From positions 496,001 to 560,000 of the forward strand of contig MCFH01000007.1 of assembly GCA_002104945.1 (NCBI GenBank): a DNA stretch of 64,000 bases. Reading direction: 5' to 3'. The first letter of the stretch is position 1. Every line of letters begins with the position of its first letter. Shown here piece by piece: positions 13,440-34,790 of the stretch. The notes below the pieces were generated by a model, which saw nothing but the letters and a program-made list of their open reading frames with translations, was not told the DNA's origin and did no database searches. This DNA is from Piromyces finnis finn. Its lineage: Eukaryota > Fungi > Neocallimastigomycota. Both the position numbers and the translations under genes were made by a program.

Positions 13440-15076
13440 TTTCTTTTTGTTTTTTAAATGATTTTTTTATTTAGTAGTTATATATATTATATGTTTTTAA
13501 AAAAAATAAAAAGAAAAATATCACTTTTATATAAGAATTTTCTATATAATTTTTGATTTGGATATCTTTTTATATTAGATAAATATATCTGATCTATTTT
13601 TAAAATCTATTTAAAATATATATATATATATAAAAAACTGTATTTAAATAACATCCTATAAAATTTACTATAAATATTTAAATAGTAAGTTATAGCAAAA
13701 GTTACTTTATTATTTAAAGTTTTGATTTTAATTAGAATGGTAATGATAATAGTATATAATTATTATATTTCATAATATTCTAATAATTTTTAAAGTTCCA
13801 TCTTAATTTTATATACATATTATAAATCTTTATTTTAAAAATAAAGATTTGAAATAATAAAATTTGAATACTTTAATAGTATTGTAGGTTTAAATAAAAT
13901 AAAGTTTTTTTTTTCTGAAATTATAAATATCTTTTCCATTTTTTTATATAATTGGAAAAAAAAACTTATATATATTTTTAAAAATAAACTATAATTATTA
14001 AAAAAAAAGAGAGAGAGAATTTTACACTGAAAATTTTCATTTTTTCATATTATAAATAGTTTTATAAATAATATAAAAAAAAAAAATAGGTTAAGTTTTT
14101 TAATAAAATAAAATAAAATTAATTATTTGATATTAAAAATTTTCACCAAAATTATGTTATATAATACCCTATAATTTAATTTTGGTGAAATAAAATAAAC
14201 TTTATTAAAATATCTATGAATGAAGTATCAAAACTATTATCATTTTATAAATCAGAATATTATTCAAGTAATATGAACTTTTTAATATTCCAAATAATGT
14301 CACAATATGATAATATTATTATTTAGTATGCTTAAATATCATTTTATATTATTTATTATTTATTTTGTTTGTTGGAGAAATTAATTAGCCTCCAATATTT
14401 CATTCTATTCCTTTTTTTTTCTTTTGAAATTTATTTAATATTAGTGAATGTATCAAATCTATATACCGAAATTTTATCTTATAAATATATGAAACTTTAT
14501 TTTGAATAATAGATTTATAATTTTCATAATTATAACAAATAATAATAATTTATATAAAAAACTTTTAAAAGATATTTTATTAAGATAATATACCTATTTA
14601 GTATAATAATAAAAATGTTAATATGACAATGAAATTTACTTGATATTTAAAAAAAAAAAAGGTCATTAATAAAAAATAATTATTATTATTTCAAAATGGT
14701 TTAAAATGATTTAAATTTTAATTATTATAACAAGTTATGTAATTATTACAATGAATGAAGGGTTTTCTTTCACATTTAAATTAAAAGTTTTTACCTTCTT
14801 TTTTTAAACTCTTAAAATAAATATCCAAAATTAACCATTCTTTTGGTGGTTGATTTCTTTTCTTTTTTTTTTTTTAAAAATCAAATTTAAGAATATTCTT
14901 TTTTTCAATTAAAGTTTTGTTTATAAAATATTTTTTATATTAATTGGTTAATGTTTACTAAACCGTGATTGGTTTATTTTAAGAAATATAAATTTAATGT
15001 TTATACTTTAAAAAATAATAAAAAAAAATAAAACAAAATATTTTTATAAACATTATTTTTAAAAAATAGAAAAAGT

Positions 15077-22329: not shown

Positions 22330-23802
22330 TTAATATCCATGTAATACATGTTGTTTATCCTTTGGTAAATTATAGTATTTTAAAGCTTCTTCTCTCATTT
22401 CTGAATTTGTTTTAGAATACCAACTCTCATTATTAAACACTGAATTTCTTACATATTTGGAAAAATCGTCTTTTCCAAGTACACCAGCTAAATGTACTAA
22501 AAAGTCACCTTTTTTAATATGATTAGTAACATTGTAACCTTCACAACAATAAGAATTAAACTAATTTTGTGGAACAATTATATAATGACTATCTTCTTCC
22601 ATATTTTGTAAAACATGGAACATAGAAGATTGGTCATAATAATAAAGATCTTCTTCTGAATGATAAAAGGCATAGGTATAAGCTTTCATCATAAAATCAA
22701 TAGACCATGGATGAACACGAATTAAAAAAACTCCTGCATTTAATCCGTTAACATCACTTGTTATTACTAAATGAATATCATCTTTATCGTCTGGTGGAAT
22801 GAATGCTTTTAATTGAATATTTGGATTGGTGAGAACAACATCTCCATCAACCCAAAATAACCAATCATAACTTTGATTCTTCATTGCATCCATTAAATGT
22901 TCTAAAATATAATATAATTTCATATAATAGATAGATCTTGTCTTTATTATATTTTGATCCTCTAACGAAAAACCATAATTATAAGCATCCGCATATTGTG
23001 CAAATTCACTAATGGCATTCTCATAGACAGAATCTTTTTTGACTTTATCTGCAAACATAATAATTTCAAATTTTGGTTCTTGAATTTCTTTTGGCTTACA
23101 ATGGTATGTTACGTCCATGTAAAGACTGCGTTCTGAACATGGTGTTCCATAAATTATTGTACTTGGTTTAATGTAGCAAGAACGGTTATCGTCACATAAC
23201 TTTTTAACTTTATCTAGTGGTTTTAATTCACACTTTTCTTCTTCGGATACGGTAATCCAATTTTCTGGATAATCATTTCCATTTTCATCTTTTATACATT
23301 TTTTATTATCATTTACTCTTCGACCAAAGAATACATCCTCAATTTCAATTGAAAAACCAACAGGACATATTATTTTATTTCCTTCATAAGATTCTAATAC
23401 TTTACTGGTATCATAAGTACAGAATATTCCGGTTACTGATGGTAAAGTATTATTGGTATTATGAATTTTTATTTTTTCATCCTTTTGAATATTAGGTTTA
23501 TGTTTAATCATTGAATGTATATTATATTTTACATCGTCTGTTGTTGTATTTGTATTATAGTATTTTAAATATTTTTGTTGCTTATTAATTTTATTATCAT
23601 TAGTTGATATAGTTGGTATAGTGATATTTTCATACTTTAGCTTTATAATATCATCCATTTTTTCACTATAAATGGTATTAAATACTTTATCATTTAGAGT
23701 ATTCATTGAAAATTTATATAATATTTCAAAAGTACCACCCAATACAAGGATAGCAGTAAATGTTAATAGTATATATTGATACTTTTTATATATTAATTCC
23801 AT
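22330..23802 (-). pseudogene. Gal/Rha-binding (SUEL) lectin-GT34 fusion, paralog 1, with a premature stop codon
   Basis: Matches 30816..32276, but TGG(W) has become TAG at 22561-22563. The same frame continues (FNSYCCEG...DFLVHLAGV...ALKYYNLPKDKQHVLHGY*) to TAA at 22330, 491 codons in total. Confidence 0.85.
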
Positions 23803-24494
23803 TTTATTATATATATATGTTTTATAATTTAAAAATAAAAATACTTTGATATAAAAGTTATAAAATATATATTTTTATATTTTTAGTTTCAAAACTCTTT
23901 GAAATAAAAATTGATAAATGTTTAAACTATTTATGTTTTTTAGTATTTGGTATATTAGCTAATTATAATAGCTATTTATTTTTTTTGTTATTAATTTTTG
24001 AATTTTTAATATTAAAAGAGTTTTTTATTATATATATTTTCTTTTTATTATATACTATTTTGAAATATTGTTGCTATTATTATGTTTGCTTTTTTCGAAA
24101 AAATGAAATAGCAACTTTATATATATTTTTGTATATTATTTTTTTTATGTTTTTTTTTCAATGTTTAAAGAGAAAAAAAAAAAAAAAAAAAAAACATTTT
24201 AATATATTTTTTAATATATATAACTTCTCCAGTTATGAAAAAATTTTATATTAAAAAGACGATCTTTATTTAATATTATTATATGAGAATGAGAATAAAA
24301 AAGTATGGCATTATTGAAACAAATATTAATATCTAACAAAAAAAACAATATTTAAATTATACCTTACTATAGATTTAGCTTATAATAAAATAGAGAATAA
24401 ATTTTAAAATTGTATATTTAACCTTTAGTCTTTAGTTCTTTCTCTTCTTTTTTATTTTAAATATGATACACTTTTGAGTGATATTTTTTGAAAC

Positions 24495-24710
24495 TATTAG
24501 GAGTGGTAATTTAGGATTTATGATTATGTCAACTTTATTAATATATTTTATGATAAAGAACTACTTGCGTTACATTCTTCTCAAACTACATGTATTTATA
24601 CATTTGCATTGTGGCTTAAACATATAATTAAATACAATATATACAAATACGTTTTAATACATTTCAATACATTTGAATACATGTGACATAACGTTTCACA
24701 TATTCTAACA
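24495..24710 (-). repeat. 3' LTR (216 bp, TG...TA on the minus strand)
   Basis: Minus strand reads TGTTAGAATATG...CACTCCTAATA. 214/216 identical to 29747-29962. Confidence 0.93.
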
Positions 24711-24720
24711 TTCCCCCTCA
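24711..24720 (-). promoter_or_regulatory. Polypurine tract (TGAGGGGGAA) abutting the 3' LTR
   Basis: Plus strand ttccccctca lies immediately next to the LTR terminus ...ctaaca, a typical copia GAGGGGGAA-TG junction. Confidence 0.88.
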
Positions 24721-25020
24721 AACCTAATTTTCTACTAAGTAAAATTTGGTTTGCTGGTGAATATGTGCATTTTATTATTTCTAAACTATTAACTATAAAC
24801 TAAATCTAATGTTTAAAATTTTTATATTTCATTAACTGGAATTTAAAATATTTCACATATATTATTCACTAATTGCTTTAAAGAATTTAAATATTACCCT
24901 ATAACTTCGTTTTTATGGATAAACTGAAAACCTTTGTATAATTGGGTAGTATTAAAGTTTAAAATTTGGATTGGATATTCATAAATTGTTATACCATCCA
25001 TTAAGGATTGAAAACCCTTC

Positions 25021-25280
25021 CGGTTTTACATTATCCTATAAACTATATTGGTAATCTCTCTGAGATTTACACAGAATTATAGACAACACATGGTTTACCT
25101 CTTTGGTTTTACGTTTTCTTAACAACTCATGGTTAACCTTTGATTTTACGTCCTTATGACAACACATATGGATAACTCTTTTTGGTTTTACGTTCTCTTA
25201 ACAACCTATGGTTAATCTTCTTGGTTTTACGTTCTTCGGACAACCTATGGATAACTCTCTGGTTTTATGTCCTTATAACT
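25021..25280. repeat. Degenerate ~39-bp tandem array (about 6-7 units) in the 3' internal region of the element
   Basis: Recurrent ggttttacgt(t/c)...acaac(c/t)(t/c)atgg(a/t)taa(c/t)ct units. Confidence 0.8.
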
Positions 25281-25677
25281 ACAATTTTCTTTAGAATATT
25301 AGCATAATTGTATTTCAATCTATTTGTAAATACTAATTAATAATGGTAAAATTTTAATTAAATTCTTAATAGTTATTTAGTTTATGTATATTGAATTTTA
25401 ACATTTTCTTTTAGGTGTTTTTCCTTCCTTTTATGCCTTTTGTATTGATTAATTATTCTTATAATATTTAAGAATATTTTACTTTGTATTTGAAATTTTG
25501 TTCTTTTCATTTTTACATATTGAATATTGAATCTTATAAATTTTTACATTTGAATTTCAATTCATTCTATTTATTAAGCCTTAGTTTCTATGCAATGTTT
25601 TAGTTATTTCCAATGTTTAACTAGAAACAAAAATTATTATCTTGAATTTTAAATTTCGTATATTCACTACTTCCCCC

Positions 25678-25681
<4 letters not shown>

Positions 25682-25747
<66 letters not shown>

Positions 25748-26279
25748 TTCCGAGTGCATTTCTCCCATCGATCAGAGTTAGCTCCAATGGTGGTTCTTAG
25801 AGAAACGTTGGCTCATTCCTATTGCTAGGTGGTTGTGACCCTCCTGGTCTGTCATACTGTTTCTTCAGCTTCGACGCTCACTTAATCCATGTACATTAGA
25901 TGCATGTCGTTGTACGATATTTCACAACTACAATGCTAAGCCTCTTATAGTCAATTTGATCACGTGTCAACCGCCCCCTAATGTTTACACTTAAATTGAT
26001 TAAGGAATATTATGTGTTTTTGGCATAGCCTAAGTCACCACTTATTAAGTTCTAATTTGGAATGTACCATGTACACTAGACCCTCTCAGGCCGGCTAGAC
26101 GAGTGTTATTATCATAGTAGTAAATTAGAAAGTTCATTTATACTTACCTGAATATCATAACCCAACCCATGGCAAACCCAGTGGGAAAATCCACAGGCAC
26201 TGACATCTGCGGGGTCGAACCAGAAGCCTTATGTATGCTAAGGAAACGCCTTAACAACCAGGATAAAAACTGGAACGAC
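25682..26279 (-). mobile_element. tRNA-Ala-derived SINE with 63-nt poly(A) tail and 13-bp TSD
   Basis: Head GCG-TTTCC-TTAGCAT-ACATA-AGGCT-TCTGG-TTCGACC-CCGCA has canonical tRNA spacing, anticodon AGC and a B box at 26211-26221. Poly(T) at 25682-25744 on plus. TSD acttccccctcaa at 25669-25681 and 26280-26292. No ORF. Confidence 0.88.
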
Positions 26280-26947
26280 ACTTCCCCCTCAAATCTAGAT
26301 GTTTAGTAATAAATATTTAGATTTGAAAATGAGAAATTTAAATTTCATAAAATTTCATTCATTTTGCATCAAATTTTCATAATAATGAATAAATTTTCAT
26401 AACATATACGATAAATTTTAATGCCTATATTAAAATAAATAACATATTCTAATGTTTTCATTCATTTTTCTCAATTACTAATCCTTTTAAGTGTTGTGAA
26501 ATTAATGAAATGATTATTAAAATCAATCAAACAATTAAAATATACTTCAAGTATTTATTTCTTTACTTCAAATTAAAATAAGTAAATATACCAGTAAGAT
26601 TATAACAAGTTAATATGATAAGATAATGACATTTAAAGTATCGATTGTTGAAGAGAATAAAGTTCTTCTAAACAATATCGAAGTCGGCTCGGTTAATTAG
26701 AATGTCAGCTAATAGGTCGGCGATCACTCACTACGTTTAAAGTGGCGATATGTATATGAGGGTTTCTAAAATCACCGTAAATTTAATTTTAAAACGGCGT
26801 CACAACATTCTTGAATGTTGGTAATAAATATATATGATGAATCAATGTCATCTAAATTTATGGAGCCCTTTCTATAAAGGTGCTACATTTTATTGATGGG
26901 ACCAAATTAAATATATGTAGATCTTGAACCATCATTAATAAATATCT

Positions 26948-27080
26948 ATGAATTTAACTCATTTCACGCTAAGTTAAATCATGATAAGTTGTTAAAATAT
27001 TATTGAATGCACCCATTTCACGCTAGGTCATTCTAAATATATATGTGTAGAATATGCTCATTTCACGCTAAGCATTTCTA
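26948..27080 (-). other. Three tandem stem-loops with different stems and an identical 12-nt loop
   Basis: Plus-strand stems atttaact/agttaaat, gaatg-acc/ggt-cattc and tagaa-atgct/agcat-ttcta each close the loop CATTTCACGCTA (26960, 27014, 27059). Confidence 0.85.
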
Positions 27081-27770
27081 ACTTTAATAAATTACCTCAT
27101 TTAAAATATATGCTTTGTAGATTAGCAATAACTAATAATTGCCTACGGGATGAGCATTTGACCAGAAATATATTTGCTTTGTAGATTAGCAATAACTTTA
27201 ATAATGCTTTTGAGGCTAAATATATTATCTTAATGTGTTGTTATAGTAAATCAATTCAAAGAGTTGTATACTGGATTAAATAATATATACTAATTTTGAG
27301 TGATATTATCATGATGAAGTTGTTTGACATTTTCACAAGGATAGTTCAATTCTTTTTGTATAATTTCATTGTAATAGGATATTTTATATAAACTTATCAA
27401 ATAATGTTTAATTATTCTAATTATTGTTTCTAATTGTAAAAATTAATTATTTTCTTCAATTCTTTCCCCTATGGCGGAAAGGATATTATCTCATTAAAAT
27501 AGTAGTAGTTAAAATATTCGAATATTTCACAAACAATTTATTTACTTGAAATAAATATGTATGCTTTTAATAACGATAATGCTATTTTATGAATGTTAAT
27601 AAAACTAATTCTTTTAAAAATAAAATGAATGTTTGTAGGTGTATGTATGTTTATGAATATTTACATAATTGAATATATGGATTTTTAAATGATAATGAAT
27701 GTAAATTGACATAATGAGTAGATCAAAATCAAATTAATAAATTTAATAAATTGAGTAAATTAGGAGAATT

Positions 27771-28973
27771 CTAATATACAATGTTTATTTGCCAAAACAT
27801 TACTGACATTAAAATAATAAATACATTTGCGAGAGAAATATATTTGAAGTTTACAGTTCCGTTTGAATCTTCTTGTTCGTCATTAAGTTGGTTATCAACA
27901 ATATAATAACCACAAGATTCACTATCAACTATATTAATGTCATTAGAAATATTAGTTATATCGGTATTGTTAGAGATAATTGGTATTTTGGATATACTGA
28001 CTTTACTAATGTCAACTTTATAACCAAGATCGCATAACTTTTTAATATAAAATTCACCAATATGATCACAAATTTCTATACCAATTTTAGTATATGTTTT
28101 ACCAAAATTGATATAGGTTGAATAGTCACAACCTGCAAATAGTGCAGCCTCAGCTGCTCTTCTTCTTACTAATCCTGGAAGAGGTTTTAAAACACCGTTT
28201 ACATATCCTTTGTTGTATTCTAAAATCTTTTTATTAATTTCTTCCTTTGTTCTCCGACCATTATTAGTTAATCCATCAATACTTCCAACATTATAAGCAA
28301 AACTACATAATGCATCATATTCATTTTGATTCCAATTATATTTATAATTGAAAGATTTTACATTAGGACCATATTTTTTTTCGATTGAAAGTTTTAACCA
28401 TTTCTCTGCAGTTTTTTCATCTATTGTTAAGCCCTCGTTGATATATGTTCCAGTAATATCATAGTTAGCACTGGTAGTACCGTAACCAATAGTCCATACT
28501 CCAACCGGATCTAAATAGGCAGTTAATACACATCCTTCAAAAATTTTGATTATGTTAATTATATTGTCACTTACTTTTAATTGATCATTATTTTGATTTG
28601 TATTTGGAACGCATAGTCGAATAACACTAGGTCCTGGGCATTGGTCCATATATCTCGTGTAAGATTCTTCTGAACAGTCATCTTCATTTATATTTTTACA
28701 TTTTCCTGTATTTAGAAGAGCTGTTCCATCTGTAAGTGTATCGACATCTTTTATACAGCATTTAATATTAACTGAGTCATGTGTACAAAAACCTGCATAT
28801 GCTTTAGCATTGCCAGTTTGTTTATCATTTAATTTACATTGATCCTCTCTAACGCAAACACCTGTTCCGACATCGGTTACATGACATTTTTGATTTTCAG
28901 CAATTACCAATGGTAGAATTAAAATTGTCGAAAAAATATTTAAAAAATATATTACTTTGCTTCTTAATCTCAT
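27771..28973 (-). CDS. Secreted, membrane-anchored GH24 (phage-type) lysozyme with two N-terminal Cys-rich modules
   Basis: Signal peptide; two GxC...C...GxC/QCPGP...CC modules; FEGCVLTAYLDPVGVWTIGYG with E/D/T catalytic residues; QNEYDALCSFAYNVG; LPGLVRRRAAEAALF; C-terminal hydrophobic segment. Intronless. Confidence 0.93.
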   Translation of the reverse strand: MRLRSKVIYFLNIFSTILILPLVIAENQKCHVTDVGTGVCVREDQCKLNDKQTGNAKAYAGFCTHDSVNIKCCIKDVDTLTDGTALLNTGKCKNINEDDCSEESYTRYMDQCPGPSVIRLCVPNTNQNNDQLKVSDNIINIIKIFEGCVLTAYLDPVGVWTIGYGTTSANYDITGTYINEGLTIDEKTAEKWLKLSIEKKYGPNVKSFNYKYNWNQNEYDALCSFAYNVGSIDGLTNNGRRTKEEINKKILEYNKGYVNGVLKPLPGLVRRRAAEAALFAGCDYSTYINFGKTYTKIGIEICDHIGEFYIKKLCDLGYKVDISKVSISKIPIISNNTDITNISNDINIVDSESCGYYIVDNQLNDEQEDSNGTVNFKYISLANVFIILMSVMFWQINIVY

Positions 28974-29732
28974 TCTTTGGAGTATTTATAATATTAATAT
29001 ATTTGATGAAATTTAATAACTCAATTGTAAATAATTATATAAAATAAATTTAGAGTTCACTAGTTAATTTATACTGTTTGTAGTGAATAAGGTAAACTGA
29101 GAATGAAATTCTATTGTTTATTTAATTCTAAATTTATATTTCGAATTTGTACTTTATTAACTTTGAATTTAATTTTACAATATCTATTCATAAATAGTTT
29201 CTAAAATAATTAATTCTTTTCAATTTTGAATACTTTAATTTATTTCTGAGTTTTAGGCATTGGTTGTATTTGAATAAAATAAATTTTATGTTGGTTCAAA
29301 ATTATTTAGAGTTCAATTTGTTTTGTTTATTTTTAAATTTAAAGATTTAAATTAAAAGTTAAAAAATTCAAAATTCAATTTTAGAATAATTTGCTTTCGG
29401 AATTTAAAATTGTCTATATTATTTTAGTATAAGGAAACTTTGTTTATATCAGGTAATGTTTTTCTTTCATTTTACTGGATTATTTGGTATTTCGTGGTTT
29501 TTCAATTTTAGATTGCCATTTCAATTTCAAAATTTTTGAAATCTCAAATTCTAGATCTCAAAACAGTTTTACCAAACATAGATAATTTCAGATTAAATAA
29601 TTTAATTGTAATGGTTAGAATTTCCTACTGTTTTCTCCTTTGACATAATACTGTATCCGGCAGTTTGATTCATCTTTCAGAGAATCATTTGAGAGTCAAT
29701 GAGGGTCATTGAGATTCTCTCTTGAGAGTCAT

Positions 29733-29746
29733 TGAGACTCTTAATC
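29733..29746 (-). promoter_or_regulatory. Primer-binding site complementary to the tRNA-Lys(CUU) anticodon arm (half-tRNA type)
   Basis: Minus strand GATTAAGAGTCTCA directly follows the 5' LTR. Its complement TGAGACTCTTAATC matches the anticodon stem-loop of eukaryotic tRNA-Lys(CUU), ending at position 40. Confidence 0.8.
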
Positions 29747-29962
29747 TATTAAGAGTGGTAATTTAGGATTTATGATTATGTCAACTTTATTAATATATTT
29801 TATGATAAAGAACTACTTGCGTTACATTCTTCTCAAACTACATGTATTTATACATTTACATTGTGGCTTAAACATATAATTAAATACAATATATACAAAT
29901 ACGTTTTAATACATTTCAATACATTTGAATACATGTGACATAACGTTTCACATATTCTAACA
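29747..29962 (-). repeat. 5' LTR (216 bp)
   Basis: Direct repeat of 24495-24710, flanked by the TSD GAAAC at 29963-29967. Confidence 0.93.
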
Positions 29963-30815
29963 GAAACGAAAAAAAAATTTTTTTTTGTTCTTTTTTTTCT
30001 ATGGTAACACAGAAATAAAAACATGAAGTGAAGCTAAGAAAAAAATTTTTTTTAATATAAGCCAATTAATTAATAATAAATTAAATGTATTAAATTAATA
30101 TAAAATTAATATATTTATATAATCCTTAATATTCTATAAACTCTATTAAATTAAAGTTGTACAAAAAAAAAATAACATCATACATAAAATTCAATTTTAT
30201 TCTTATCCACATGCAATGATAAAACATAATATATCACACGATATTTAAAAGTTATGGTAATATTTATTCAAGATTTTATAACATTATAATATAATTTCTC
30301 TTAATAAAAGTTGAAGAGCTTACCCATTTTATTTTTTAATAGTAATAACAACTATTGTGAATATTTATTAATATATAAAATATATTTGTATCAAATATAT
30401 CATTGAAATATATTGATTATATATGTCCTTTTATTAAATATTATTATTATATATATGATTAAAACAATATATAAAATAATATGTAACATTTTTATTTCTT
30501 TGGGATAATATATATTTTATTTTACCATAGGTTTTATAATTACAAAGAGGATTTATATTCATCTCTTTATAATTATTAAGTTATGTTTAAAATATTTATG
30601 ATTTTTTTTTTCATTATAATTAATTATAATAAATGAATAAAAAATAATAATATTAGTATAAAGTTTTTTTTTAAAAAAAAAGAATATACAAAAAATACAT
30701 TGCTAATATTTCTTTTTTTTATTTATTTATTTATTTATTTATATATTTATTAAATAATCAATGAAAATATATATTTTCATAAAAAATATATATTATAATA
30801 AAGTTTTTTTTTATG

Positions 30816-32276
30816 CTAAAGTTTAATCTGTTCATCCTTTGGTAAATTATAGTATTTTAAAGCTTCTTTTCTCATTTCTGAATTCGTTTTAGAAAACCAA
30901 CTCTCATCATTATAAATAGTTTCTCTAATACTTTTAGCAAAGTCATCTTTACTAATTATACCAGCTAAATGAACTAAGAAATCTCCTTCTATTATATTTC
31001 CTACAAATTTAACGTCACAACAGTAAGAGTTAAACCAATTTTGTGGAACAATTATATAATGACTATCTTCTTCCATATTTTGTAAAACATGGAACATAGA
31101 AGATTGGTCATAATAAAAAAGACTTGCTTCTGAATGATAAAAGGCATAGGTATAAGCTTTCATCATAAAATCAATAGACCATGGATGAACACGAATTAAA
31201 AAAATGCCTGCATTTAACCCATTTTCATCATTTGCTATCACTAAATGAATATCATCTTTATCGTCTGGTGGAATGAATGCTTTTAATTGAATATTTGGAT
31301 TGGTGAGAACAACATCTCCATCAACCCAAAATAACCAATCATAACTTTGATTCTTCATTGCATCCATTAAATGTTCTAAAATATAATATAATTTCATATA
31401 ATAGATAGATCTTGTCTTTATTATATTTTGATCCTCTAACGAAAAACCATAGTTATAAGCATCCGCATATTGTGCAAATTCACTAATGGCATTCTCATAG
31501 ACAGAATCTTTTTTGACTTTATCTGCAAACATAATAATTTCAAATTTTGGTTCTTGAATTTCTTTTGGCTTACAATGGTATGTTACGTCCATGTAAAGAC
31601 TGCGTTCTGAACATGGTGTTCCATAAATTATTGTACTTGGTTTAATGTAGCAAGAACGGTTATCGTCACATAACTTTTTAACTTTATCTAGTGGTTTTAA
31701 TTCACACTTTTCTTCTTCGGATACGGTAATCCAATTTTCTGGATAATCATTTCCATTTTCATCTTTTATACATTTTTTATTATCATTTACTCTTCGACCA
31801 AAGAATACATCCTCAATTTCAATTGAAAAACCAACAGGACATATTATTTTATTTCCTTCATAAGATTCTAATACTTTACTGGTATCATAAGTACAGAATA
31901 TTCCGGTTACTGATGGTAAAGTATTATTGGTATTATGAATTTTTATTTTTTCATCCTTTTGAATATTAGGTTTATGTTTAATCATTGAATGTATATTATA
32001 TTTTACATCGTCTGTTGTTGTATTTGTATTATAGTATTTTAAATATTTTTGTTGCTTATTAATTTTATTATCATTAGTTGATATAGTTGGTATAGTGATA
32101 TTTTCATACTTTAGCTTTATAATATCATCCATTTTTTCACTATAAATGGTATTAAATACTTTATCATTTAGAGTATTCATTGAAAATTTATATAATATTT
32201 CAAAAGTACCACCCAATACAAGGATAGCAGTAAATGTTAATAGTATATATTGATACTTTTTATATATTAATTCCAT
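30816..32276 (-). CDS. Type II membrane SUEL-lectin-GT34 (GMA12/MNN10-like galactosyl/mannosyltransferase) fusion, intact paralog 2
   Basis: N-terminal TM; lectin pattern CPVGFSIEIEDVFFGR...C...KVKKLCD.NRSC...YGTPC...YMDVTYHC; GT34 motifs DWLFWVDGDVVLTN, NGLNAGIFLIR, YDQSSM and DFLVHLAG. Intronless. Confidence 0.9.
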   Translation of the reverse strand: MELIYKKYQYILLTFTAILVLGGTFEILYKFSMNTLNDKVFNTIYSEKMDDIIKLKYENITIPTISTNDNKINKQQKYLKYYNTNTTTDDVKYNIHSMIKHKPNIQKDEKIKIHNTNNTLPSVTGIFCTYDTSKVLESYEGNKIICPVGFSIEIEDVFFGRRVNDNKKCIKDENGNDYPENWITVSEEEKCELKPLDKVKKLCDDNRSCYIKPSTIIYGTPCSERSLYMDVTYHCKPKEIQEPKFEIIMFADKVKKDSVYENAISEFAQYADAYNYGFSLEDQNIIKTRSIYYMKLYYILEHLMDAMKNQSYDWLFWVDGDVVLTNPNIQLKAFIPPDDKDDIHLVIANDENGLNAGIFLIRVHPWSIDFMMKAYTYAFYHSEASLFYYDQSSMFHVLQNMEEDSHYIIVPQNWFNSYCCDVKFVGNIIEGDFLVHLAGIISKDDFAKSIRETIYNDESWFSKTNSEMRKEALKYYNLPKDEQIKL

Positions 32277-33675
32277 TTTATTATATATATATGTTTTATA
32301 ATTTAAAAATAAAAATACTTTGTGATATAAAAGTTATATAAAGTTTTATTTTATGTATTTTTGGGTATATTCTTTATTATAACTATTAAATAAAATATGG
32401 TTTATTATTTAATCTTTTATATTTATTTAATATTGTTTATAATTATTGCTGTTTTTTTTTTTTTTTACTTCTATAGCTATAATACTTTTAAATTTTCATT
32501 TTATAATTATATATGCACTATTTTTGCATAGTTTAAGTATTTAAAGAAAATTTACTACTACTAAATAATTGATTGTTTCTTTTTTTTTTTTTTTTTTACT
32601 TTTTAAAAAAGAAATTGGTAAAAAAAAAAAAAAAAGGACCTATTTATATACAATTTCTAAAACAATTATGAATATGTTATTGTATTGTTACTTTCATTAT
32701 ATTATATATTATATAATATAAATAGTTAAATATTATTTCTATTATAATATTAATTCAAGCATTTCTTTTTTTTTTTTTAATAGAAAAATAGAAAAATAGA
32801 AAAAACATTTTTCACACAAAATTAAATTAAAATTAATAATTTAAATTTAATATATGTTAATTATATATTGAATACATATTTAAATAAACTTTAATTAATA
32901 TCAAAATATGACAATTTCTATTATTCAATCCTTATTTACAATAAAAGAATACATTAAAAATTAAAAAAAAAAAAAAAAACAATATTGTGATATTGTTACA
33001 TTTACTTGAAAAGAAAATATGAATTATAAATGCACTTTTATTGAAAAATCATCATCCATTTCTATATTCTATTCTTCATTTTATTCTATTTATTTTATTT
33101 TTAAAATCATTATAATTTAAAAAAAAAAGATGAAACATTAAAAATATACTCATATAAATCCTTTACTTTTTTAACATTGCAGTATTCATAGAATTAAAAA
33201 AAAGAATAAATTAATTATTATCTTTTAATATATTAAAATGAAAAAATTAATTGTAATTTTTATAGAAAAAAACTTTTTCTTTATATATTATATAAAATTT
33301 TTGTTTTAATACTATTCTTTTTTGTTTACTATTGTTTAAGGAAATAACTAATAATACTATTTTCAAAGTATTTTCATTTTAATTATTCAATACATTTTTT
33401 TATTTCTTTCTTCAAGTGTTTATAAATCCACAATTAAAATTTATATTATAATATTTATAATATATTTTTATTGTTTTTTTTTATTTTTTAATATGTAACA
33501 TACTTGAAAGAATAATTAAATGTTCAATTTTAATATTGTTTGTGAAATAATTTAAAACTTTAATATATAATAAATTTAAAAAATGTTAAATTAAAAAAAT
33601 GTAATAAAATTATATTGAAACAATCATTGTTTTATTATTTTTAAATAAAAGGTGGGTGTTTTATAAAATGAAGAT

Positions 33676-34689: not shown

Positions 34690-34790
34690 TTTATAATTAT
34701 AGAATTACTATCGCTAACATTTGATTCAAACCACATTTATTTATACATTTACATTGTGGCTTATACATCTAATACAATAATATTTCATAT
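34690..34790. mobile_element. Diverged solo-LTR fragment related to the 216-bp LTR
   Basis: 26-nt exact match tatttatacatttacattgtggctta at 34738-34763, with alignable flanks (agaattactatcgctaacatt vs agaactacttgcgttacatt). Boundaries are approximate. Confidence 0.65.

Follow-up and report, generated by a model that had tools for sequence, protein, structure and literature searches.

Three hairpins with an identical loop belong to a conserved structured domain in the sense RNA of a non-autonomous LTR element of the gut fungus Piromyces finnis

The Psi regions of retroviruses and LTR retrotransposons hold several neighboring hairpins, some of which present the same short loop on different stems, and packaging signals usually adjoin the primer-binding site (PBS). 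The transport or posttranscriptional elements of simple retroviruses are built from internal loops in one long stem or from 100-nt direct repeats. Iron-responsive-element arrays and the MS2, PP7, and boxB hairpins combine a constant loop with a variable stem, an unpaired stem base, and tandem copies. Finally, LARD and TRIM elements and the gene-capturing LTR elements of plants keep their LTRs, target-site duplications (TSDs), PBS, and polypurine tract (PPT) but have lost gag and pol, and they sometimes carry a captured host gene. For Ty1/copia elements, the RNA signals that act in cis are poorly defined, and we found no published work on such signals in the Neocallimastigomycota.

Here we describe three adjacent hairpins (the trio, or array) in a 64-kb stretch of Piromyces finnis DNA ("the window" refers to this whole stretch; its G+C content is ~20%). 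The trio lies inside a 5.5-kb LTR-bounded element (24495 to 29962, minus strand) and, as expected of a Psi-like signal, is a conserved structure in the sense genomic RNA. It resembles Psi in being a cis element whose loops are fixed and whose stems need only pair, which would be expected of non-autonomous, helper-dependent elements. In contrast with Psi, its loop sequence is unrelated to any known to us, it lies in mid-element, 3' of an ORF and not beside the PBS, and inspection of relatives with gag or pol did not reveal it. With constitutive transport elements the trio shares a location between the last ORF and the PPT and 3' LTR, repeated identical sites, and the prospect of serving an unspliced RNA, but it consists of three separate hairpins with an 8-nt apical loop, and no relevant Rfam match was obtained at E ≤ 1. 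The constant loop, variable stem, unpaired stem base, and tandem copies recall iron-responsive-element arrays and MS2, PP7, or boxB sites; however, the sequence and length of the loop differ from those of these sites, the unpaired base falls within the 3' arm, at a distance that varies, and the context is that of a retroelement. Like LARD and TRIM elements, the family keeps LTRs, TSDs, a PPT, and a PBS-like block and is without gag and pol. It differs from them in that intact-looking ORFs for secreted or membrane proteins vary on one backbone and in that the hairpin domain is the best-conserved internal part.

The trio was found through the 12-mer CATTTCACGCTA, which has three exact matches in the window, all on the plus strand (26960 to 26971, 27014 to 27025, and 27059 to 27070). 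The chance expectation is ~0.07 matches even with one mismatch tolerated, and three copies were seen in 0 of 100 shuffles. Inverted repeats flank every copy, and each copy is the tip of a minus-strand hairpin. When 156 nt of minus-strand RNA were folded, three hairpins with the 8-nt loop GCGUGAAA were obtained at −35.0 kcal/mol, compared with −23.8 ± 3.2 kcal/mol for shuffled sequences (z = −3.5; 0 of 200 shuffles equaled this value). These results confirm an earlier note on this DNA, which had reported three stem-loops with an identical loop. The plus strand of the same stretch folded more weakly (−22.9 kcal/mol; z = −1.4), because the U·G and A-U pairs that close the loop exist on the minus strand only. 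On that strand the outer bases of the 12-mer pair (A-U and U·G) around GCGUGAAA, and the note's assignment of the structure to sense-strand RNA, with these two pairs extending the stem, agrees with the fold. Two details of the note had to be corrected. With the closing pairs included, the stems are 10 to 15 bp long, not 8 to 11 bp, and each has one unpaired base in its 3' arm; moreover, to call the stems unrelated was an overstatement, since hairpins 1 and 2 are recognizably diverged duplicates in which compensating changes preserve the pairing. The three hairpins, with scores from the covariance model described below, are as follows.

27048 to 27080, minus strand: hairpin 1, loop GCGUGAAA (fold; 36.2 bits)
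27005 to 27033, minus strand: hairpin 2, loop GCGUGAAA (fold; 32.1 bits)
26944 to 26986, minus strand: hairpin 3, loop GCGUGAAA closed by A-U and U·G (fold; 36.9 bits)

The borders of the element that carries the array were defined by comparing three loci on three contigs of assembly GCA_002104945.1 that encode an identical protein. The features of the window copy are listed in the order of its sense strand.

29963 to 29967, no strand assigned: 5-bp TSD, 5' side (locus comparison)
29747 to 29962, minus strand: 5' LTR, 216 nt, with TATAAATA (TATA) and AATAAA (repeat comparison)
29733 to 29744, minus strand: PBS-like block TTAAGAGTCTCA, 2 nt past the 5' LTR (identical in copia-type elements)
27771 to 28973, minus strand: cargo ORF, 400 aa, with a signal peptide, a Cys-rich domain, a GH24 phage-type lysozyme domain (PF00959; E = 1.4e-25), and a hydrophobic C-terminal tail
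26280 to 26292, minus strand: internal second copy of the PPT, central-PPT-like, duplicated by a nested insertion (block conserved in relatives)
25682 to 26279, minus strand: nested poly(A)-tailed fragment of a non-LTR retroposon, 598 nt, not part of the family backbone (no counterpart in the two other near-identical copies, L001 and L002)
24711 to 24723, minus strand: PPT, GAGGGGGAA core, immediately 5' of the 3' LTR (same tract and LTR start in L013 and L015)
24495 to 24710, minus strand: 3' LTR, 216 nt, starting TGTTAG and ending TTAATA in the element sense (direct repeat, 99% identical to 29747 to 29962)
24490 to 24494, no strand assigned: 5-bp TSD, 3' side, GAAAC on the plus strand and GTTTC in the element sense (repeated at 29963 to 29967)

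The 5-bp TSDs differ at the three loci compared (TAAAC, TGGAT, and GTTTC), and the LTRs start with TGTTA and end with TAATA, an imperfect inverted repeat with TA rather than CA at the end. The PPT abuts one LTR; thus, the sense strand of the element is the minus strand of the window, and both the lysozyme gene and the hairpin loops are in sense. The LTR-element context that the earlier note had supposed was borne out in the form of a non-autonomous element with 216-nt LTRs and 5-bp TSDs. No gag or pol was found in the window element, whose only ORF of at least 60 aa is the lysozyme, and it gave no protein match to the reverse transcriptase (RT), RNase H, or integrase of related copia-type elements; the window as a whole held no transposon proteins. 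The loci searched yielded no tRNA genes. Around a 2-nt spacer, the 5' LTR and the PBS-like block meet in an inverted repeat made up of the terminal 9 bases of the former and the initial 9 of the latter (29733 to 29755, minus strand).

The internal PPT of this backbone is similar to the central PPTs of some retroelements. In eight other loci (L012, L013, L014, L015, L022, L024, L027, and L028) the block lies near the array, 264 to 708 nt 3' of it or ~480 nt 5' of it. In L014, comparison showed that a purine tract first taken as the border of a 3' LTR is the internal copy. The nested retroposon fragment, which is found in the window copy only, was inserted into this block and is flanked by a 13-nt target duplication (25669 to 25681 and 26280 to 26292), so the pieces on either side of it were compared separately. 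The 3' part of the fragment recurs in L002 (15572 to 15776). LINE-like ORFs lie in L004 (2159 to 6234, minus strand) and L002 (713 to 2644, minus strand), as a pair (302 aa, followed by 1,056 aa with an RVT_1 domain) next to one element copy; these ORFs are not called as genes, and they may represent a source family of the nested fragment.

Six copies of the element were found in P. finnis, three of them near-identical, and all 18 of their loops match in 12 of 12 bases. The diverged copies have 95% (L004), 92% (L005), and 80 to 95% (L006, with a different central protein domain) identity, and in L005 and L006 hairpin 2 shows a compensatory G-C to A-U change. Divergence among these copies is low and mosaic, probably as a result of exchange between copies, and a conservation profile across them did not single out the array. 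A metagenome scan for two loops 25 to 55 nt apart returned 25 contigs. Eleven of these, with 20 to 26% G+C, repeat the arrangement of the array, with two or three of its hairpins in unchanged order on stems that differ from those of P. finnis; around the array they are 70 to 80% identical to the window element, and several also share the internal PPT block, the stretch before the LTR, or the LTR. The named relatives of one ORF on such a contig are from Orpinomyces and Neocallimastix, which places these AT-rich contigs in gut fungi. When more distant relatives were compared, the array was the main or only block in common. The other 14 contigs were GC-richer and had the 12-mer within tandem repeats or palindromes, with its flanks unpaired. 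The same was true of the seven matches to the two-loop pattern in prokaryote genomes (tandem repeats or long palindromes), and both sets served as negative controls; viral contigs gave no match to this pattern. In GC-richer L018, L007, L031, L010, and others, the 12-mer occurs by chance inside unrelated repeats or palindromes of bacteria and other organisms.

Across the collected arrays, 42 hairpin instances were examined, 33 of them distinct, and the 8-nt loop formed in 40. Since the scan selected for two loops, the third loop of each contig is an unbiased sample; among nine contigs this loop was identical in seven, had a pair-keeping U·G to U-A change in one, and had two changes in one. The closing U·G pair is replaced by U-A in two relatives. 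Over 23 hairpin cores (20 distinct), 91.4% of cells pair, compared with 78.6% ± 2.0% after shuffling (0 of 500 shuffles reached the observed value), and pairing falls to 11 to 47% when the partners are slid by one to three columns. Both sides have changed at five of the seven pairs. Because paralogues and close relatives account for many of the hairpins in this comparison, these counts overstate the number of independent events. From nine diverged arrays, RNAalifold recovered the three hairpins unguided, with 18 pairs supported by compensatory changes, along with an upstream hairpin whose loop ends in UCUACAA and another small hairpin. The covariation that had been proposed on the basis of the window is present in the family: the loops are mostly invariant, and the stems compensate. 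These data show that selection holds constant the 8-nt loop together with the two pairs that close it, whereas the stems need only pair.

The same data contradict the idea that the array is a neutral remnant of a tandem triplication, which we find scarcely credible: hairpins 1 and 2 are clearly diverged duplicates, but the loops have not changed while spacers and stems diverged, pairing was kept by compensation, and the triplet is conserved in relatives that are just 70 to 80% identical.

The trio does not stand alone. A second hairpin type adjoins it on the 5' side, occurs in one to four copies in relatives, and has a stem that covaries, and small conserved stem-loops lie on the 3' side.

27174 to 27192, minus strand: second hairpin type, copy 1; 5-bp stem, same 9-nt loop as copy 2 (repeat search, relatives, RNAalifold)
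27111 to 27127, minus strand: second hairpin type, copy 2; 4-bp stem, 9-nt loop ending in UCUACAA (repeat search, relatives, RNAalifold)
26810 to 26943, minus strand: small conserved stem-loops 3' of the array (sequence common to relatives, fold)

The entire 370-nt domain, including these flanking stem-loops, folds with a z score of −2.5. The hairpins are shown to be part of a conserved structured domain in the sense RNA of the element, and the domain is under selection.

A 22-position covariance model built on the hairpin was then searched over 270 kb, as the earlier note had advised. Scores of at least 24.6 bits were obtained at known element hairpins only, always on the sense strand, and the next best score was 12.9 bits; the motif was in none of the ~40 ordinary genes in these 270 kb. 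Rfam 15 gave no match at the gathering score in the window, and at E ≤ 1 over 24300 to 30100 it gave only an unrelated, weak miRNA match in the LTR. The trio is outside any curated RNA family, in agreement with the earlier statement that it matched no recognized motif. Nor is it a CRISPR array, as that statement also held: the constant unit is 12 nt within variable palindromes, and the genome is fungal. In the published literature, the 12-mer and its core gave chance primer matches only, and nothing on this element was found in work on gut-fungus retrotransposons and lysozyme transfer.

We next considered whether the array belongs with the lysozyme gene or with the element. The array lies 690 to 830 nt 3' of the lysozyme stop codon, on the same strand. 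The identical lysozyme protein is encoded at three loci of GCA_002104945.1, and its closest named paralogues are from Piromyces finnis. Beyond P. finnis, the catalytic domain is matched best over its full length (~60 to 64% identity) by unnamed proteins of public genomes and metagenomes that bear choline-binding or SH3 domains typical of bacteria; this comparison suggests that the lysozyme was acquired from bacteria. In relatives, the ORF upstream of the array encodes a GT92 glycosyltransferase (L027), another glycosyltransferase-like protein (L013), a leucine-rich-repeat protein (L011), or a Cys-rich membrane protein (L015). The upstream ORF of L024 (301 to 1002) matches the lysozyme protein in the C-terminal tail only, L006 (10001 to 11302) keeps the N-terminal Cys-rich domain and the C-terminal tail around a different central domain, and L015 (90 to 764) has, by eye, a similar Cys-rich N terminus. 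The cargo proteins are thus modular across family members. In L009, a distance of 1.2 kb separates the array from the PBS-like block upstream of it, and this interval holds no sizeable ORF. L013 has a PPT, then an LTR, and then a PBS-like block, and an 87-nt repeat recurs 2.3 kb apart in it, a layout that suggests tandem units with a cargo-less basic unit of ~2.3 kb. The cargo ORFs are uninterrupted, and most encode secreted or membrane proteins.

Cargo-gene paralogues of the ordinary kind, at loci of N. lanati, A. robustus, and metagenomes and on transcript-like contigs, had no array, and its derivation from the 3' untranslated regions (UTRs) of the cargo genes was rejected for this reason. 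Conversely, the array is damaged or gone at three loci where the ORF is intact: hairpin 1 is broken or lost in the P. finnis copy L005; L044 is without the ~670-nt region that bears the array in L013, its 76%-identical relative; and L051, a probable transcript contig that runs from the ORF through the domain, has one hairpin left, whose loop contains an insertion of 5 nt. Such loci argue for a role of the array in the element itself and not in the expression of the ORF. Since different ORFs or none precede the array and host paralogues lack the hairpins, the array belongs to the element backbone and not to the lysozyme mRNA.

The backbone has an affinity to Ty1/copia elements. In three gag- or pol-bearing loci of gut fungi (L032 of N. 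lanati, L046 of A. robustus, and the metagenome element L044), the 12-nt block TTAAGAGTCTCA is identical and occupies the same position after the LTR; L032 additionally shares an 11-nt LTR start and the LTR end with the window element, as well as the 5-bp length of the TSD. The N. lanati element has 241-nt LTRs that are 99.6% identical, and its pol is in two ORFs, of which the one with the integrase (rve) precedes that with RVT_2 and RNase H; no gag or protease ORF of at least 60 aa was found in it. The A. robustus element has a copia-type gag and a protease-integrase ORF, and L044 has RVT_2 fragments. In addition, the array-bearing L012 holds a remnant of copia-type RNase H between the internal PPT block and the LTR. 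As judged from these shared sequences, the array family is probably a non-autonomous lineage derived from Ty1/copia, the Ty1/copia pol architecture being seen in the relatives only and the window element having no pol. Whereas the window element combines a lysozyme with the array and has no gag or pol, these relatives have gag, integrase, or RVT_2, and no hairpin was seen in L032 (LTR to LTR), L046 (5' LTR to integrase), or the visible part of L044; all three are incomplete or degenerate. No intact autonomous partner was found in the window, in the element loci, or in a scan of viral contigs. In that scan the PBS-like block returned 66 contigs, which were unrelated and mostly phage-like, and the RT ORFs in L004 and L002 were ruled out as an autonomous partner, being LINE-like.

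Each hairpin would hold out the same single-stranded loop on a rigid stalk, and the identity of the loops leads us to infer three equivalent docking sites for one trans-acting factor. Inside the element the complement of the loop is at chance frequency (9 seven-base sites versus 9.8 in shuffles), which also points to a factor acting in trans. The hairpins therefore most likely serve as repeated sites at which a factor handling the element RNA docks, and a multivalent binding array, as the earlier note proposed, is a plausible and the most economical reading. The Gag protein of a helper copia-type element is our favored candidate for this factor, put forward tentatively and with somewhat less than even confidence. 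An RNA that encodes no Gag could not be captured during translation and would hence require a strong handle of its own for entering helper particles; such a requirement would also account for the presence of the array in the gag-less lineage and for its absence from what was inspected of the relatives with gag or pol. Those relatives also provide an argument against Gag, since they share the PBS-like block and show no hairpin in their visible parts. Moreover, the near identity of the N. lanati LTRs suggests recent movement, so that array-less lineage seems not to need an array, and a distance of 2.9 kb separates the trio from the 5' end of the element, which puts it away from the PBS, the usual neighbor of packaging signals. 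A broader proposal, which we regard as possible but doubtful, is that an undescribed RNA motif marks copia-derived, gag-less elements that carry and multiply whole genes for secreted or surface enzymes in anaerobic gut fungi, including a lysozyme with its nearest non-fungal relatives in bacteria, with the trio as the helper-particle handle and thus a natural cis signal for retro-transduction. If the hairpins do provide such a handle, the spread of intact genes in gut-fungus genomes by copying, including that of a gene probably derived from bacteria, would be explained.

As the main alternative, the constant loops may bind a host RNA-binding protein that acts in the nuclear export, stability, or localization of the intron-less element RNA and any cargo mRNA on it, much as do the export and posttranscriptional elements that some retroviruses have 3' of their coding region. 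This is conceivable, if rather unlikely. The array is always 3' of the ORF and 5' of the PPT and 3' LTR, a multivalent design with identical loops would fit an adaptor protein, and the uninterrupted cargo ORFs for mostly secreted or membrane proteins and the probable transcript L051, which spans the ORF through the domain, are consistent with such a role. However, relatives with gag or pol would depend on such a service as well, yet no array was seen in them; the ORFs of L051, L044, and L005 are intact while the array is decayed or gone; and ordinary genes in the 270 kb searched do not have the motif. If a host protein is bound instead of Gag, the trio would represent a new posttranscriptional element of a lineage about whose RNA biology next to nothing is known. 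The motif is short, sharply defined, and covarying, and the small covariance model matches only this element family in 270 kb; it can therefore serve as a practical marker for annotating such elements in very AT-rich genomes, which are hard for gene and repeat callers.

It is improbable that the loops instead pair with another RNA, be it the primer tRNA, another host RNA, or a second genomic RNA in a weak loop-loop dimer. Some yeast LTR elements make additional tRNA contacts beyond the PBS, and the loop includes the stretch GCGU, which could pair with itself through two wobble pairs, but a wobble-rich palindrome of 4 nt is weak and complements of the loop within the element do not exceed chance. 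We consider a role at the DNA level (hairpins in single-stranded cDNA or a DNA-binding protein on the 12-bp core) to be very improbable. The sense strand does fold as DNA (z = −2.2), and 12 bp would suffice for a protein site; nevertheless, arms that vary yet still pair do not fit recognition of double-stranded DNA, wobble pairing holds for just one of the strands, and folding as RNA is much stronger. Less probable still is a 3' UTR regulator particular to the lysozyme mRNA. The array does follow the lysozyme ORF in the same orientation, and the earlier note had offered control of that mRNA as one function, but the same array follows GT92, glycosyltransferase-like, leucine-rich-repeat, or Cys-rich ORFs or no ORF at all, host paralogues do not have it, and it has decayed beside intact ORFs, with hairpin 1 broken in L005. 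The distribution of the array largely refutes this explanation.

Several minor observations concern the LTRs and the surroundings of the element. The first 19 bases of the LTR (29944 to 29962) resemble the 5' arm and loop of hairpin 1 (27057 to 27080, minus strand), with UUAGAA..AUG and GUGAAA in common; GTGAA at that LTR position is kept in array-bearing relatives and absent from the N. lanati element, and the resemblance could be due to chance in AT-rich DNA. Partial LTR-like stretches outside the element copies, at 34717 to 34779 (84% identity to the LTR) and in L004 at 13969 to 14086 (75%), may be solo or older LTRs. Finally, the element is flanked by two copies, 94% identical, of a gene that encodes SUEL-lectin and GT34 domains (22352 to 23990 and 30829 to 32467), an arrangement that resembles a local duplication on either side of the element.
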